Below the pieces are notes generated by a model. That model had not been told where the DNA came from, did not search any database, and saw only the letters and a list, made by a program, of their open reading frames with translations. Shown here one piece after another: positions 2,201 through 64,000 of a stretch of 64,000 nucleotides of DNA. The DNA is taken from positions 153,031-217,030 of the forward strand of contig JAHLWZ010000792.1 in the NCBI GenBank assembly GCA_020536535.1, read 5' to 3'. The position numbers and the translations under genes were made by a program. This DNA is from Pelomyxa schiedti. Lineage: Eukaryota > Protista > Evosea. Each line of letters starts with the position of its first letter. The stretch's first letter is position 1.

Positions 2201-2389
2201 TTCCTATCAATCAAAAGTTATTTTTCACAACTTGCTTCTATGTTTGTTTTTGTTTTTCTCACACACACATCCACTTGCCGTGTCAGGGAGTCTGGTCCAA
2301 CCAATGTCAAGTGAGTACACAAAACGACTCAACAACATTGGAATAAGGCCGATTCCTGGAAAAGAACAAACAGTTGAAACGTTGCGGAG

Positions 2390-5358
<2,969 letters not shown>

Positions 5359-9862: not shown

Positions 9863-11029
9863 TTACTCCCAGTTAATATCAGCATCAGCCCTGTGAGGAA
9901 ATAAATAAATTAAACTAAACTAAACTATGGGTATATACGTGGCGGTGGGATCAGGGACATCCAGGTTCGGGGGAGTTGGTGTTATTACTGGAGGGGATTG
10001 GGATTGTATTTGGTTAGGAACTTGTGAGGCTGGCCCAAGGCCAAAGGAACTCTCACTGGAAGGCAATAGTGAAGACCATGCAGGTTGTGATCCCGGAGAA
10101 GTGTATGTTGTGGTCTCGCCTGGTAATCTTATCTCTGGTTCGAGAGTTTCTTCATCAATCATTGAAAATGATGATGTGAGAAGTGTAGGTGCCGGCGTTG
10201 GTGAAATATTTGTGTCAGTAATGTGAGGAGATGTGATGGCAGGAGTTGTGATGCTGGGTTGTGGTGTTTTTGAGATATCTGCTGTTGACACTCCACTTCC
10301 GAAGTGTGAATGATGGAGGAGGCCTGCCTTGATAATATCAGGTTGGGGGCATACTTGAAGTGGAACGTGGTCAAAGGGTAAAGCCTCATGTGTCTTCCAC
10401 GCAACATTGACTGCATATTCAACAAGTACTTGAGGGTCAACTTTGTCTGAAAATGGTTAACCAAGAACGCAAGCCCCGTAAATCCAACTTTTTTGAGCCA
10501 GATCGAAGGCATGAAGTTGTTTTTTAGCCTCGTCCAAAGCATTTGACATTTCCAAGTCAATTTCGTATAGGTGTTCAACCAAAACTCCTGGGAATAATTG
10601 CTTTGTATAAGTTAATAAGGAACAAGTTAACTGTGTGGAAGTCATTGCCACGAAATCGCAAATAACGAAGCAGGTACCGATGGCTTTGTTCTTTTCATCT
10701 ATTTTGTCTTGGAGCACATCCAACTCTCTCTGAAAAGATTGCCGCTCACGCAGCTGCTTCAACAAAGAATGCAACTTTCTGTCCTGTTCAATGACGAGCT
10801 GCATAACCGAGTCCGGAGTGTCGCCAGCCACATTTCCTGAAAGCCCCAACTTTGCATGCTGCACAAAACGAGGGAAAAAACAAAAAAAAAAAGAAAGAAA
10901 CTGTGGGCACCACACCAACATGAAAAAGAGGAAACAAACCTGCATATAACCGATCGTAAGCACTGAGTTCAGCAGTCTCTTGACGAGGAGCGTGTACTCA
11001 TCGAGGCATTCGTGTACGGTCTTCTTCAT
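9863..11029 (-). CDS. MED4: Mediator subunit 4-like protein
   Basis: N-terminal coiled coil (QLVIEQDRKLHSLLKQL), then VDPQVLVEYAVNVAWKT...PQPDIIKAGLL, which matches the Med4 motif (V..ELL.YA.RIS...P.P..MR.G.L, from recall). A Pro/Ser-rich tail ends in DINWE* after a final intron. Confidence 0.65.
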
Positions 11030-11177
11030 CGTGTCGGGAAAAAAATAGTGAGATCTCACTGGATCTCGGCTGCACCTTTTTAGCCGAACAGAAGAATTAA
11101 TTGACAGGTGTCAGATGCCAACGCGAAAAAGAAAAAGTCTCGGCCGTACGAAGCAGAAAAACAAAAAAAAAAGAGAG

Positions 11178-14100
11178 ATGGCCGACGTAAGTCGCAACAG
11201 CGGGGGTGCCAGTTCCAGCGGAAGTGCGAGTCAGCAACAACACGGATCTCCCGTTCCTTTGTGGCAGTCGTACGTGCGGTTGCAGGCGAGAAACGCGCAA
11301 CTTGAGAAGGAGGTCACTACGCTGCGCGACGCTCTCAAGCAACTCACGAGCAAGTTTTTGGCGTACCTTAAGAATCCCGCGTCTGTGCCAGATGCGGCGC
11401 AGGCGATCGCCGCCGCCAACGCGGTGGCTGGCGCGCCGTCTCCAAGCGCTCCTTCGGTCACTTCCTCCAGCGGGCCTACGAAGGAAGGTAAGAAAGTAAG
11501 AAAACTACCTACACCCCCTGTGAGCTCCCAGCAGCAATCAGCTTCACGGGTGCTACCTCAACCACAACCACGGCCTCTGCCACAGCCGCAGTCGCAGTCA
11601 CAGTCACAAACACAACCACAACCACAAGCGCAACCACAAACACAAACACTTACACAACCACAAGCGCAAACACTTACACAAGCACAAGCTCAGACCCAAG
11701 CACAAGCGCAAACGCAAACACAAAACCTGCAACAAAGTACGCAAATACCAGCCACTTCACAAGAACAGACTCCTCTTCCGGCACAATCAGAACCTCAAAT
11801 GCAGACACAGTCACCTCCTCGAATTAAAGACTCAGAAAAGCCCCAGAACAACATAAAACAAGAGGAAACAAAAGATGTAAAAACCAAGAGCCAGTCAAGT
11901 CTGGTTGGAGTGTCTTCCCCAGACTCTACGCAAGTGAAAGAAGATAAGCCTCAAGAAAATTCATATTCTTTGTGCTCAGATTCAGTTCAACTGGCAGCTG
12001 CTTCTCAGTCACAGCAAGACAAATCTCAAGTTTTGGTTCCACAGCCATCACAGGAACTCAACCATGTGGAAACAGAAAACGTTGCAATGCCAGTCTCAGA
12101 TCCGGAGACTTTGGAAGCATTTGAGAAACTCACACTTCTCATAGAGACTATCCATATTCAAGACTCCAAGCCAAACATGGAGAAACCAACAGCCCCTCCA
12201 TGCAAGCTACCATCGCGAGTAATGCATTCTCGCTGCCGTGCTGTGAAAAGAAAACCAATACCCATCATCTCAAATCATCTGGCTATTTCACCTCGGACAC
12301 CAAACTTCTTTACATTTGATTTTTTGTTTCACTGGCAAGAGATTGAGCTTAAACTCCTTGTATTTGTCCAGCAACTAGACGCTTTACTTGAAGAATACTT
12401 AGTCCAATCCCCATCCCTCCAAGAACAGCCCTTGGATGGAATGCCTAGTCACACAAGCCAAGTATTTCCCTTCAAAAAACCTCATTGAGAGTCACTCTTA
12501 AGAAGGATGAGCCATTGTCTTCCAATATAAGACCGTATTCTGTAGATGCCCCAGAAAGACCACTGTCTGGGACGGTAGTAAAAGAACGAGCACTTTCGGC
12601 ATCAGAAACGTTGTCCCTTAAGATATCCGATATAGATGGTTTGTCAGTTTGAGTAGCTTTATTTAACAGTACCTAGTATCTGCACAACCTGCTGTGTCAC
12701 CCAGTCCTGAACCAAGGTGTGATTACCTTTCTTTCATATTGAACTATAGCTGCCCTTAGAAAGTGGTATTTCCCATCAAAGCATTCCTATGGCTGCGCTG
12801 CACCTGCTCCCGTTGATAGCAATGTCAGTATATGTCTGATTCCTCCTTCAGATTTGAAGCCAACTCTGGAAAGTAAAACTGCTTGCTTGTAATCGTCCCA
12901 CCATGTTCAATAATTCACCCAGAGTTCACTCAGCGGTTTCCCACATCAGCAACGCTTGGGGATCTTATTAAGGCAGCCTGGGATAATTGGGCAATTAGTA
13001 TGAAATACAAGTCTGCTGAGGAACAATTCACACAAGTATCTGTAACTGCTTATAAATTACCAAATAACAAAAAAAAAAAAAAAAAAAAGATTCTTATGGA
13101 TTACGATTTTGCCATCATCAGAGCACTTTGCACCACTTCAAGTCTTGAAGACCAAGAAAGAGTGGCCAACCTTGTTATTCCGTTTTTTGATTCCATCAAT
13201 CCTATTGAGACCCAAAAAATGCTACACATTGTCATCGATTCTGAAGTAAAGACTTCTGGTTGGCATTCCAAAATTTTGGCCTCCTAATATTGGCAGTAAA
13301 TACAAGCGATTTACTAAGAAGCAATGGACCTCTACCGAGATTATTGGTCACCTTTACACAGCTTAAGATGAAAGCCTTTGTGAAATCGACCATTATTCCC
13401 CTTTTAAATAGATGGAATGCCCTTGAGCCTCCTCCTTCATATGAGGTAGTGGGGTTGTTTGTTTAAGACTTGATAGAATTAAAACTCGTCCCCTGCAGCT
13501 TGACCCAAAGAACCTTCCCACTCCCGAAATTCCTGACCTTGTGAAAACAAATGCACAGCTAAATACTAACAGGACAAACCTGCAACTTATAACCAAGGAA
13601 TTTATTGGTCTTCTTACCAGTGAAGTAAATTCCATTCCAAGGTATAATTTATTATTAATACCCAATTACGGTATTCAACATATGAAGTGAGGTGAGAACT
13701 GTTCTTTCACACTTGTGGCATGTTGCTTTTGAAAAATTTGGTAAGACTGCCTACTTAGCTGTAGGCGCATTTATCTTTGAGCGAGTTCTCTGCTCTCCAA
13801 TAGGGAACCCTGAAAAGTACAACATACATGATGGTACAAAACAAAACAAATTTTTTTTACCTATCCTAGTTACTTTTATGTAGGAACTCTCCGGAGAGGA
13901 CTGATGCTATTTTTGAAAGTAGCTCATGCCCTTGCATACCAGGAGCCTTTCCATGACGGATTCATGTGCTGCATGAATGCTTTTATATTAACAAACGTAG
14001 ACAGCGTCTCAAATTTAATCCGCTTGATTGTGGTGTGTCATATCCACATTAATTCCTAGTCCAACTGCTACTTCAGGATGTTGTCTCCACACTTCCCAAG

Positions 14101-59974: not shown

Positions 59975-62076
59975 TCAACAGTAAATCTGTAGCCTCTGAA
60001 CTATGTGGCTTCTGCAAATGGGGCATTGAGTTTTTGTGTAGGAAGCTGAACAGCTACTACACATCACATGCCCACAGGGTACAAACGCAACCTGTGGTGG
60101 CGTAGGCTTCGCCAAACAAAGCGGGCATTCCGCCTTGTTGGCTGACGAAGAAGCTGAGTTCTCTGGGTGGTGATTTCTAGGAGCTGATGGTTGAGGACCC
60201 GGAACTGTGGCTGTGTCTTCAACATACCAGTGTATCTCCGGGAATTGTGACAGGTACTCCGGTTTGGAGAGTTCTGCGAGCAGTGCGTTCTCTTCTGCCC
60301 CCAGAAGAGTGACGCAAAGCTCCAACTTCTCTTTGGTGTCTACGAGAGTATTTTCCTCTGATGGTAATACTTTCCGCCTTCTCATCTTCTTCAGTTCGGC
60401 CTCTACGTCATCAAGTTGGTCTTCAGCCTCCACTCGGCGGTTTCTAACCTGTAGCAAATTTTAGTATTACAGCAAGCATTTCAACAGACTTGGGTGAGCC
60501 GTTCAAGATTGGCTTCAGTTGATTTTTCAACTTGGTGAAAGTGATTGACAAGTCCCTTGAATATATTCAGTTTATCTTCTATCTGTTTATTTGCATTGAT
60601 TTCTCGTTGTGCATCTAACTCAAACTCGTGCATCCTATGCATAGCATCAGTTTTCACTGCCAACGCCCGTTCGGCAATGCTGTTTAGTACACGAATTTCC
60701 TTTTCAAGCAGTTCGTGAGTCCGCTGAATTTGGGTTTCCACCTCTTGGTGCAATTGGGTAAGAGGTTTTGTGAGTCCCACAAGTGTTTCTTGCCCCTGCA
60801 ACAAGGAGTGACCCACAGCGTCAGATGATAAGGGTGAGCCATCGTCACAATTCCGCGACTTCGATAGTAGGTCAAATGCAGCCGAGAGAGCCTGATCTAG
60901 TTCGACTACTGTTGATTTCCGCTGTGAGAGAAGACTAGTGTCCACAGATTTTGACTCCCTGATAGATTTCTGAAATGTATCCAATTTATTTTGCAGAGCA
61001 GATACGTTTTCTAGTGTAGCATCAAGTGCGGCACTGTGTGTGGCCAGTCTGTCGGTTTTCTTTAAGCGACCTGAGGTTGCCAAGTATTTCTCACCCGTTT
61101 GAGCAATATCTTGCAACGTATGAGAGAGGTTACGGCACATTTCTTCTCGGGCAACAGTTTTCTCACTTAAAGTATATTGTAACACACCCAGCGTCTCCAG
61201 TTGATTTGCCACCCCAGTGAGTTTTGCAATGGTTGGCCACACGTTTGGCTGCTGTGCGGGTGTTTGAATAGGGTGACCACTAGCCACTTTAACGAGGTTT
61301 GCACTTGAAGTTGCGATTGTATTTGTGGTAGAAATGGAATGCAATTTGGTGTTTGCAGTTGCAGTAGCCGCAGTTGCAGACGGAATTGGCGTGGCAACAG
61401 AAGAATGTGAATTTGTAGAAGTAGCAGAGTCAACTCTGCTGGGGACTGGCCGCCTCTCAATGTTTTTGAACCACACCAACTCAGGCATCGGTGAGCTCAA
61501 GTGAGCCAGCGTCTTGTCGAAAAGTTCTATTGTTCCATGAATAATCGCGCACGCCGGGGCCGTGTTTGGGTGACTGGCCCTCGCAGTGTAAAAAGTGACA
61601 AAGTTAGAGTCCACGGCGTCGGCGGCAGTCATCGGCACAAACAGTGCCGAAAAGTCGATGAACTTTCGGCGCAGCCCGGCCACGCAGCCCGCGGCGCGGG
61701 CCTGGGCCGCCTCCAAGGCAGCCAGCTCGGCGAGGGAGGCGGCGGCGCCGGGCGCGCACATGGCCTGGCACTCGCGCTTGAGGGCGCCGGTGAGGGAGAC
61801 CAGGGCGGCGGCGGCGACGTCGGCGGCGAGCTGCATGGTGGTGCGGCACTCGAGGGCGTAGCACTGGGGGCCGCGGTTGCCCGCGTCGTGGGTGGCGATG
61901 CCCACGCCGTTGGCCGCCGCGCCGAGGGCGTTGCTGCGCGCGGGGGTGTGGGTGTGCGGCCCGGGGAGGCGCAGCGAGCCGATCTGCGCGGCGATGTGGT
62001 CCAAGGTGGCTGCCTCTGGGAGTACGAGGGTGGTGAATGCCAAACGGGCTACACCCAGGGCTGGCTGGTTGGCCAT
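59975..62076 (-). CDS. Coiled-coil protein with C-terminal C3HC4 RING finger (putative E3 ligase), two exons
   Basis: The 531-aa ORF splices (intron about 60489-60449, phase 0) to an exon ending CPLC...PCGHVMCSSC...CPICRSHIVQRLQIYC*. Confidence 0.85.
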
Positions 62077-62194
62077 CTCGCGGGAACGGGAAAAAGAAAG
62101 GGTTGATAAACTTCACCGAAAAGAACCGGGCAGGACAACAACATCGGAGGCCTCACTACCACAATGGCCCACGATATAATTCATACCAGAGAAT

Positions 62195-62203
62195 AAAAAA
62201 AAA
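62195..62203 (-). terminator. Oligo-T (T9) putative Pol III terminator of the permuted tRNA-Asp unit
   Basis: A9 on the plus strand, about 28 nt downstream of the 5' half on the minus strand. Confidence 0.6.
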
Positions 62204-62231
62204 GAAGCAAGTGGTTGCACTAGGTGAAACT

Positions 62232-62311
62232 AGACATACTACCATTATACTAGCAGAGGAAGGAAAATCCCTCTGCCTGGGAATCGAACCCAGATCGTCT
62301 GCGTGACAGGC
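62232..62311 (-). tRNA. Circularly permuted tRNA-Asp(GTC): 3' half 62311-62269, 9-nt spacer, 5' half 62259-62232, junction 29/30
   Basis: Joining the 5' half to the 3' half gives CCTCTGC-TA-GTAT-AATGGTA-GTAT-G-TCT^GC-CTGTCAC-GCAGA-CGAT-CTGGG-TTCGATT-CCCAG-GCAGAGG-G. This has a 7/7 acceptor stem, 5/5 anticodon stem, 5/5 T stem and G73. Confidence 0.8.
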
Positions 62312-62439
62312 GATGCATCACCACAGTTGTTTGGATTTGTTGTTATGAAGCACTTGCCGAAAGAAGCCCCAGTGAGACGGTTCTTTTTTGGTCTGAAAAA
62401 TACCCGGCAGTGACTTATGGGAGCACACCGAAGAGGGAG

Positions 62440-62446
62440 AAAAAAA
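62440..62446 (-). terminator. Oligo-T (T7) putative Pol III terminator of the permuted TTG tRNA unit
   Basis: A7 on the plus strand, about 32 nt downstream of the 5' half and at an equivalent position to the other copy. Confidence 0.6.
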
Positions 62447-62478
62447 CCACACAGCAAGTGGTTGCACTCGGTGAAACA

Positions 62479-62558
62479 AGCTGTACTTACCATTATACTA
62501 ACAAAGGAGAAAGCCTCCCCTGTCTGGGAGTCGAACCCAGATCTGCCGAGCCAAATTC
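62479..62558 (-). tRNA. Circularly permuted tRNA with TTG anticodon (nominally Gln; His/Asp-like body): 3' half 62558-62516, 8-nt spacer, 5' half 62507-62479
   Basis: Joined sequence CCTTTGT-TA-GTAT-AATGGTAA-GTAC-A-GCT^GA-ATTTGGC-TCGGC-AGAT-CTGGG-TTCGACT-CCCAG-ACAGGGG-A. All stems pair (three G-U in the acceptor and anticodon stems, one more in the D stem). A32 and G37 are atypical for Gln. Confidence 0.65.
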
Positions 62559-62723
62559 GATGTATCACCGCAGCGATGTAGGTTTTATTATTGTGTTATC
62601 CACAGCACTTGCCCGAAAATCAGCTCCCCTGAGCCAAATACTTACTACGACAGCCATTCCCGCACTGCCTTATGGGCCACAAAAAGTCTAATTAATTTTT
62701 GGCTTTTTCTGCGAGTGCTCGAC

Positions 62724-64000
62724 ATGGCAGGAGGTGAATCTTTGCGGGTCGCGGCGTCCGTACTTGCGAACGCGGGATCGAGGCTGGATAAGTGCACAGA
62801 TGAATCGTTCCGCAAGCTATTGGGCTGGGCCGACGTCTTCGATAAAACGGTGCAGTCGGGGGGTGGGGGGTGTCATTGGAGAGCGGGGCGGGGCCGGAAA
62901 TTATTCAGCATCTTGATCTTGATTTTGTTTGTTTGTTCGTTTTGTTGTCTCACTGAGTCGTGGGTTTGTGTGTTCACAGATTCATGGCGGTGGACAAACT
63001 ACTCAGGATGCTGCTGCCAAACAATACAGGAATTTGTTCAAACTTCACCCTGCTTTGAGGTAGTAGTATGCCCCAGACCATAACTAGTTAATTGGTTACC
63101 ATTTATCTTATTAATATTTTGAGGCACGTGAAGTTTGTTTCTATTTAATAGGCAGCTTATTTCTGTACTGGAGTCGCACATAATTAATTTCACAAGAAAC
63201 ATTGACCTTGAGAACTGCACTATGAGAAATGCTATCTTGAAAATCTTACTCAACAACCCAACGATGTCTTGTCATGGACTAGTTCTGGTGATGAAAGAAT
63301 ATTCCAAATCCACTCGAGGAAAAGTTCCTTTGCATGTTGCAATAACTGAGGTAGAACACCTGCATTGTTCCATTTTTTTATAATGCTGTGCAACTTCTAA
63401 CTGCAAAGGACTGTTATCAAACCACCAACCTAGCCTACCAGCTGCACTTTCTGGGTTCCACCTGTGAGAACTACTTGCTCCCCAAGCTCCCTCTTCCCCG
63501 TCAAGAAGACGTTCCGGCAAGTTTGGTACCCGTAGACACACCAACATCGGAGCCATTCGTCACTCCCATGGACTGGGGGAAGGCCAATAGCAGTTCATCC
63601 GCCTTTGGTAAACTGCTTCACAGTGAATTGCATCGACTGGCTGCAAATTACACGTCCAGCCAGGAAGCTTCCCATACTTTACTAGACACATTCGAAACAA
63701 ATCTCACTGAGCAACTCGCAAGTGTTCCTAGAGTGGTATGTACACTCCCAAAGCAAATTTCCCACATCACCACAGTATTGATAACCACCGCACAACAGGA
63801 AATCGCTTGTGTTGCACTCTGCACTGCCTATTCCAGTTCCTTCCCGGAAAACGCAGTTTGCCGTCATATCTATGGGTGCTGCAATATATTAACACGGTGC
63901 TTATGCTCAGCAAGGGAACACCTGTGGCACATAAACAGCCAATTGTTGGAGTGCACTTGCGCCACAAGCACCACTCTCCAAATAGTACGCCTTTGTCCCC
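62724..64000 (+). CDS. Hypothetical protein, weakly FANCF-like N-terminus; runs off the window end
   Basis: MAGGESLRVAASVLANAGS...ESFRKLLGWADVF and ILKILLNNPTMS loosely recall FANCF (RRALQWARY; LLENRAL). Spliceable exons continue downstream. Confidence 0.4.

Follow-up and report, generated by a model that had tools for sequence, protein, structure and literature searches.

A candidate circularly permuted tRNA gene with a UUG anticodon, next to a permuted tRNA-Asp unit, in the archamoeba Pelomyxa schiedti

Can a tRNA gene whose 3′ half stands ahead of its 5′ half be a working gene in an amoeba and, if so, how would its product be matured and which amino acid would it carry? This question is raised by two such units in Pelomyxa schiedti, an anaerobic, non-photosynthetic amoebozoan (archamoeba), located in the terminal 64,000 bp of contig JAHLWZ010000792.1 (217,030 bp long, assembly GCA_020536535.1; the 64,000-bp stretch is hereafter “the window”, and positions are counted from its first base). 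An initial sequence-only reading had described positions 62479–62558 as a second permuted tRNA unit with a TTG anticodon, and these coordinates proved exact: they enclose the two halves and the 8-nt spacer of what we call unit 2, on the minus strand. The distance to the neighboring tRNA-Asp unit (unit 1), which that reading had put at 255 bp, is 247 bp when measured start to start.

Two tandem units with reordered tRNA halves

The two units lie in tandem on the minus strand between 62195 and 62635 and share one order of parts, namely a conserved upstream block, an A/T-rich stretch, a 16-nt leader, tRNA positions 30–73, a spacer, tRNA positions 1–29, a 26-nt trailer, and a T-run. In unit 2 (62635–62440), the upstream block (GGCTCAGGGGAGCTGATTTTCGGGCAAGTGCT, 62604–62635) is followed by the leader (GCTGCGGTGATACATC, 62559–62574), which would be removed at ^G30, and by the 3′ half (62516–62558), which includes the anticodon loop ATTTGGC, the T arm, the 3′ acceptor strand, and A73. 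The spacer (GGCTTTCT, 62508–62515) then joins position 73 to position 1 of the 5′ half (62479–62507), which includes the 5′ acceptor strand, the D arm, and positions 27–29, and the unit closes with the trailer (TGTTTCACCGAGTGCAACCACTTGCT, 62453–62478), which would be removed after U29, and with a T7 run (62440–62446), likely an RNA polymerase III terminator. The corresponding parts of unit 1, also on the minus strand, are the upstream block (62349–62378), the leader (ACTGTGGTGATGCATC, 62312–62327), the 3′ half with anticodon GTC and G73 (62269–62311), a 9-nt spacer (ATTTTCCTT, 62260–62268), the 5′ half (62232–62259), the trailer (AGTTTCACCTAGTGCAACCACTTGCT, 62206–62231), and a T9 run (62195–62203) that is again a likely polymerase III terminator. 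CCA is encoded in neither unit.

Read in native order, neither unit was called as a tRNA by ARAGORN in the window, and a search against Rfam models, including tRNA and self-cleaving ribozymes, returned no match, either at the gathering score across the window or at E ≤ 10 in 61500–64000. Once the 5′ half was placed before the 3′ half, ARAGORN called unit 2 as a 72-nt tRNA-Gln(ttg) and unit 1 as a tRNA-Asp(gtc), both as regular cloverleaves with a 4-nt variable loop, and the cloverleaf of unit 2 coincides with its minimum-free-energy fold. The position of the junction is unambiguous, as both units form a 5-bp anticodon stem and a 7-nt loop at 29/30 only. Nucleotides U8, A14, G18G19, A21, U33, T54-T55-C56, and A58, together with G53-C61 and the 15–48 pair, are intact in both molecules. 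When rejoined, unit 2 makes up a complete tRNA of class I whose anticodon is UUG, and its loop sequence with the TTG anticodon, the A at position 73, and the A at position 32 are as the sequence-only reading gave them.

A scan for further permuted sites was built on a T arm (G53-C61, TTCRA loop) followed by a 7-nt strand, one base, 0–100 nt, a fully complementary 7-nt strand, and U8. It matched units 1 and 2 only across both strands of the 64 kb, and yielded no match in 20 block-shuffled windows. Likewise, no additional tRNA halves were found up- or downstream of the two units. With introns allowed, ARAGORN produced a false tRNA-Arg(cct) with a 164-nt intron by combining the unit 2 5′ half with the unit 1 3′ half (62232–62507), a label that annotation pipelines could mistakenly attach to this locus.

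Both units are found 130–480 bp upstream of the protein gene Pelo_10208, on the same strand, for which no homologues able to provide synteny were obtained. The 5′ end of this gene coincides with a GC-rich patch (61500–62150) carrying long overlapping open reading frames (ORFs) on both strands, which looks like a composition effect and not like extra genes. The contig ends about 1.4 kb past the tRNA pair, within a partial gene (62724–64000, plus strand), and since the window stops at this contig end, extra units of any tRNA cluster would fall off the assembly. The P. schiedti genome paper reportedly describes an assembly from amplified single-cell DNA. A chimera produced by assembly or by single-cell genome amplification is ruled out here, given that two diverged copies, with tRNA bodies ~75% identical, display the same layout. 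The proposal that unit 2 is a second permuted tRNA unit and a paralogue of the Asp unit was borne out, with the 29/30 junction, leader, trailer, upstream block, and T-run all common to the two.

Substitutions between the units

The rejoined bodies differ at 18 of 71 common positions, with ten of these differences located in stems. Six of the ten form three double compensatory changes (7–66 CG>TA, 27–43 TA>GC, and 31–39 CG>AT), all of which had been listed by the sequence-only reading and all of which are real, and four are single changes to or from G-U, at 3–70, 4–69, 10–25, and 29–41. Not one of the 21 stem pairs is broken between the units. When ten stem substitutions were placed randomly, all 21 pairs were kept in only 2 of 200,000 trials (~1 in 100,000), and pair counting identified 98.3% of cells as paired, versus 33–57% with partners slid by 1–3 columns. 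Hence, the substitutions respect the fold of the rejoined molecule, as had been claimed, and an anticodon change after duplication, also suggested initially, is the simplest history for the pair. The suggestion that unit 2 may be a decaying copy did not hold: all stem pairs and all universal nucleotides checked are intact, so that unit 2 displays none of the stem-breaking or core-nucleotide mutations by which a tRNA pseudogene would be recognized.

A stronger statement made about the compensatory changes, that the pairs hold only when the halves are combined within each unit, stands for 27–43 and partly for 7–66. The 31–39 change lies within a single half and therefore carries no information on which halves pair.

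Identity between the paralogues was calculated for each part separately. It reaches 24/26 in the trailer and 13/16 in the leader, compared to 23/29 in the 5′ half, 30/43 in the 3′ half, and 53/72 over the exons. The upstream block is identical at 23/32 positions, against ~35% for its flanks, the spacer at 4/9, and flanks across the locus at about 27–41%. Leader and trailer are more conserved than the tRNA itself, which points to a common processing signal, and the spacer appears free to vary, as expected of an excised piece.

Precursor structure, maturation, and rival readings

Leader and trailer are predicted to form a helix in both units, with free folds and cloverleaf-constrained folds in agreement. 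In unit 1, leader ACUG(U)GGUGA pairs with trailer UCACCUAGU, followed by GC with GU, and in unit 2, leader CGCU(G)CGGUGA pairs with trailer UCACCGAGUG, followed by ACA with UGU. This predicted helix of 11–13 bp stacks on pairs 27–29:41–43 and leaves 2–3 unpaired nucleotides, (A)UC, ahead of G30; the two cuts would face each other at its foot. Three sets of differences between the units fit the GGUGA:UCACC register: a leader G>A change converts a G-U into an A-U pair, a leader U>C change combined with a trailer U>G change converts a U-U mismatch into a C-G pair, and a trailer A>U change adds an A-U pair. An alternative register (GUGGU:ACCAC plus UGCA:UGCA) was rejected, as it is broken by both unit 2 leader differences. 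A hairpin within the trailer was also considered as an anticodon arm and discarded, having a 4-bp stem and a 6-nt loop.

The acceptor hairpin is lengthened across the spacer by a 73:−1 pair in both units (G-U in unit 1, A-U in unit 2), as well as by a 74:−2 pair (A-U, then G-C) read from the spacer sequences directly, the alignment having a gap there in unit 2. Further out, the two units both have 8 bp of complementarity between GGCAAGTG of the upstream block and CACTTGCT, where the trailer ends ahead of the T-run (62349–62362 and 62604–62617 versus trailer ends 62206–62213 and 62453–62460, minus strand), the last 8 nt of the trailer, CACUUGCU, being complementary to GGCAAGUG of the block. Long-precursor folds use this helix in both units, with a chance match estimated at p ~0.05, and the upstream block could be either an external promoter element that matches by chance or a transcribed 5′ end that pairs with the 3′ end. 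Each leader is preceded by a conserved block and each trailer followed by a T7 or T9 run. Between the halves, the unit 1 spacer (62260–62268) contains TTTT, possibly a weak polymerase III stop and as such a point against transcription through both halves; the unit 2 spacer contains TTT only.

From this arrangement, a maturation route can be proposed. RNA polymerase III would start from an external upstream element, as suggested by the reversed order of the internal A and B boxes, and would stop at the T-run. The precursor would fold as a cloverleaf with its acceptor end closed by the spacer, and the leader–trailer helix would place U29 beside G30 on the 39–43 strand. An endonuclease would remove leader and trailer and a tRNA ligase would seal 29/30, presumably generating a circular intermediate by analogy with Cyanidioschyzon (PMC3978253), from which RNase P and tRNase Z would cut out the spacer before CCA is added. 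The product of unit 2 would then read CAA and most likely be charged with glutamine.

The cutting step is where this route departs from described systems. A bulge-helix-bulge (BHB) motif was defined by two cuts, each 2 nt 3′ of a 4-bp central helix and on opposite strands. Cut-site pairs were enumerated exhaustively over a broad region at each end, once under strict rules and once allowing bulges of 2–4 nt and outer helices of at least 2 bp. Among these pairs, no BHB motif, strict or relaxed, was common to both units, and none fitted 29/30. As no such motif is present, the standard BHB route cannot do the cutting, and an initial cutting step for which no enzyme logic is known counts against the proposed route. 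Cleavage by a hammerhead or by IRE1 was also considered and rejected, with cut sites off consensus (by inspection) and no Rfam ribozyme match. On balance, we regard unit 2 as probably a working, circularly permuted nuclear tRNA gene, a tandem paralogue of a permuted tRNA-Asp(GUC), and matured along the route outlined above.

Other ways of combining or using the halves have to be weighed against this reading. The unit 2 5′ half comes before the unit 1 3′ half, so that in formal terms the two could also belong to a natural-order gene interrupted by a long intron: a tRNA-Asp would be assembled from the unit 2 5′ half (62507–62479) and the unit 1 3′ half (62311–62269) across a 167-nt intron made of the unit 2 trailer, intergenic DNA, and the unit 1 leader, leaving the outer halves as relics of a tandem array that was cut short. 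The ARAGORN call made with introns allowed covers precisely that span, the cross combination folds and is called tRNA-Asp, and the unit 1 leader is able to pair with the unit 2 trailer, since most of the leader–trailer helix is invariant. However, this combination retains nine of ten inter-half pairs, with a G27-A43 mismatch, and the reciprocal one (unit 1 5′ half with unit 2 3′ half) eight of ten, whereas all ten form within either unit. A natural-order gene would also place the T7 run within its intron and the conserved upstream block ahead of 3′ halves instead of 5′ halves, and its supposed relics are as intact as the halves in use, co-vary with their own partners, and are accompanied by no additional halves on either side, all of which makes it very unlikely. 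A two-piece tRNA, which we consider quite unlikely, would keep the permuted order and dispense with the 29/30 joining in cis: the halves would be separate RNAs, through a stop at the spacer and a restart at the A box, or be split by RNase P and tRNase Z, and, held together by the acceptor stem, pairs 27–29:41–43, and the leader–trailer helix, they would be joined in trans as in archaeal split tRNAs or work nicked. The TTTT of the unit 1 spacer would fit such a stop, and the A box follows directly after the spacer, in the position that marks the start of an ordinary tRNA gene. The long leader–trailer helix is reminiscent of the complementary leaders found in split tRNAs of archaea, and the Caldivirga maquilingensis tRNA-Ala is split at 29/30 (PMC4090602). 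This is countered by the short TTT of the unit 2 spacer, by a gap of 8–9 nt that is too small for a separate upstream promoter, by split tRNAs having no known eukaryotic case, and by the helix that would remain on the anticodon stem and would not fit the ribosome.

Two further readings deny the locus a role in decoding. The permuted pair could be silent, as a relic or a young pseudogene that arose as a side effect of rearrangements in a tRNA array, is not expressed or not matured, and has intact stems owing to a recent origin or gene conversion; the missing BHB motif, the odd anticodon loop and discriminator of unit 2, and the failure to find orthologues would all be in line with such a history. 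Yet 25% divergence with three double compensatory changes and every stem pair preserved is not the outcome of neutral decay, leader and trailer are conserved above the exon level, and both units have kept their terminators, so that we deem a relic unlikely. Alternatively, the units may be tRNA-like elements serving as a processing signal, as a TFIIIC-bound boundary element upstream of Pelo_10208, or as a source of small RNAs. Their position ahead of a same-strand protein gene would suit this reading, as would their B boxes, which TFIIIC is able to bind on their own. This reading is highly improbable, as the four stems, the geometry of the anticodon loop, and the nucleotides of tertiary pairs all show selection, the mark of a molecule obliged to fit the translation machinery.

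Decoding of CAA and relation to known permuted tRNA genes

If unit 2 is a working permuted gene, the identity of its product can be approached through the use of CAA in Pelomyxa. CAA is frequent, with 85 occurrences versus 73 for CAG in seven ORFs of the window. Within the two Pelomyxa EF2 genes, CAA is found at five columns that are ≥90% Gln in homologues and at no His-conserved column, the conserved His sites being encoded by CAC or CAT. This indicates that CAA stands for Gln in Pelomyxa and that a UUG tRNA is needed, while for unit 2 itself it shows only that some CAA reader carries Gln. Unit 2 has the anticodon UUG, the 7-nt loop, and the U33 of a tRNA-Gln(UUG), and likely carries Gln identity.

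A resemblance to tRNA-His complicates this assignment. G37, C38, A73, and the G10-C25 D stem of unit 2 seem reminiscent of eukaryotic tRNA-His. A32 is rare in eukaryotic tRNAs, and the acceptor stem includes two G-U pairs; we take A32, G37, C38, A73, and these two pairs to be unusual for a tRNA-Gln. His identity and G-1 addition depend on position −1 and on the anticodon (G-1 and GUG in tRNA-His), and unit 2, A73 aside, has a U at position −1 and a TTG anticodon. A His-charged CAA decoder is counted against by this U-1, by the non-GUG anticodon, and by the absence of CAA from His-conserved EF2 columns. For unit 1, G73, GUC, C38, and G10-U25 presumably represent the classical Asp identity set. 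One may infer a GUG-type ancestor, which would lie one change from both GUC and UUG. Remoulding, in which a duplicated tRNA gene gains another anticodon and keeps the parental body, is known in eukaryotes. Unit 2 differs from it in that the change would have occurred within a permuted gene, and in that the loop nucleotides A32, G37, and C38 and the discriminator A73 are off the usual Gln pattern.

Other loci examined alongside touch on glutamine and its codons. A 457-codon ORF of the window without a Pfam match (11115–12488, plus strand) is very Gln-rich (42 CAA and 23 CAG) and hence leans heavily on a CAA-reading tRNA. The two EF2 genes of P. schiedti are located in the window (~2300–5300, plus strand) and at a locus of JAHLWZ010000434.1 (local positions 10001–12916), and the window EF2 exon is 97% identical to elongation factor 2 [Pelomyxa schiedti] and 80% identical to the second copy on the other contig. 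The same JAHLWZ010000434.1 locus encodes a partial, 675-residue aminoacyl-tRNA synthetase-like product (local positions 1–2473), in which a GlnRS-type N-terminal domain (PF04558) is associated with an anticodon-binding domain and a core of class II Asp/Asn/Lys type (PF01336 and PF00152), an unusual combination.

Relatives of the permuted pair were sought by several routes. The trailer motif GTTTCACCNAGTGCAACCAC gave 11 matches in JGI metagenomes, GTDB genomes, and IMG/VR, all in coding DNA without a T arm upstream, consistent with chance. Homologous loci were also approached through the spurious ORFs overlying them, in sense and antisense: the sense-strand ORF had four matches among 1.84 billion representatives, the best of which is a tandem P450 fragment matched by chance, and the antisense ORF had no match among 5.8 billion clusters. 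Two other Pelomyxa loci (45 kb) contained no tRNA-Gln(UUG) or tRNA-Asp gene and no leader, trailer, or upstream motif. Overall, the metagenome, prokaryote-genome, and viral collections searched provided no orthologue of the pair.

The literature searched includes no report of permuted tRNA genes in amoebae or of Pelomyxa tRNA genes, and places permuted tRNA genes only in Cyanidioschyzon, prasinophytes, chlorarachniophyte nucleomorphs, and Thermofilum, none of them split at 29/30. Table 1 of PMC3978253 compiles 34 such genes from C. merolae, four prasinophytes, the Bigelowiella nucleomorph, and Thermofilum pendens, with junctions at 15/16, 20/21, 37/38, 50/51, and 59/60 and without any Asp(GTC) or Gln(TTG), and later papers have added more green-algal and nucleomorph cases. 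The closest eukaryotic counterparts are the permuted genes of Cyanidioschyzon merolae, Ostreococcus, Micromonas, and chlorarachniophyte nucleomorphs (Soma 2007; Maruyama 2010; PMC3978253). As in these, a short intervening sequence bridges the acceptor ends (8–9 nt in Pelomyxa, within a known range of 1–74), and the genes combine an upstream promoter-like element, a downstream T-stretch, a complementary leader and trailer, and a CCA that is not encoded. Unlike them, the Pelomyxa pair resides in a non-photosynthetic amoebozoan, is split in the anticodon stem at 29/30, lacks a BHB, corresponds to other isoacceptors (Asp(GTC) and TTG), and combines nearly the same leader and trailer with two different tRNAs.

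Archaeal introns and split tRNAs provide the nearest parallel for the junction itself. Breaks at 29/30 or 30/31 are described for the tRNA-Ala of Caldivirga maquilingensis, which is split at 29/30, and for the tRNA-Lys of Nanoarchaeum and Staphylothermus, 29/30 being also an archaeal intron site (PMC4090602). These share with Pelomyxa a break in the 5′ strand of the anticodon stem and ends drawn together by long complementary flanks, but they involve separate genes or genes in natural order, and a strict or relaxed BHB that is cut by a broad-specificity endonuclease (PMC4090602). The permuted genes of Thermofilum pendens (PMC3218864) are similar in their order and very short intervening sequence, and differ in being archaeal, BHB-dependent, joined at 59/60, and interrupted by an intron at 37/38. 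Taken together, these comparisons suggest that the Pelomyxa locus works like a permuted tRNA gene in a new lineage: it displays the permuted layout and a canonical cloverleaf with 21/21 pairs and the universal nucleotides, and departs from described genes in having no BHB at its junction and in placing this junction at 29/30, outside of the described positions.

Eukaryotic permuted tRNA genes in the literature searched all derive from red or green algal lineages or from their nucleomorphs, and have so far been interpreted either as a peculiarity of algae or as a relic of archaeal type, linked to BHB-recognizing endonucleases. A pair in an amoebozoan would widen this distribution to a different eukaryotic supergroup, and a split in the anticodon stem without a BHB would mean that processing can follow a logic other than that of algae and archaea. 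Both genes escape standard tRNA finders, and the intron mode of ARAGORN returns a false tRNA-Arg in their place, so that genomes of this kind may be assigned tRNA sets that are seemingly incomplete or incorrect. With its 16-nt leader and 26-nt trailer, the pair also offers a defined substrate for an enzyme hunt, and unit 2, as a case of anticodon change within a permuted gene, makes the question of whether Gln or another amino acid is delivered at CAA directly testable. More tentatively, it is conceivable that essential tRNAs (Asp and the CAA reader) are matured from permuted genes without a BHB in Pelomyxa and possibly in further Archamoebae, with a conserved leader–trailer module that directs cuts flanking the anticodon-stem nick and a ligase that seals it. 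If true, tRNA gene permutation would have been solved a second time and independently, by a eukaryote outside the algae, and the leader–trailer module could have spread between tRNA genes.
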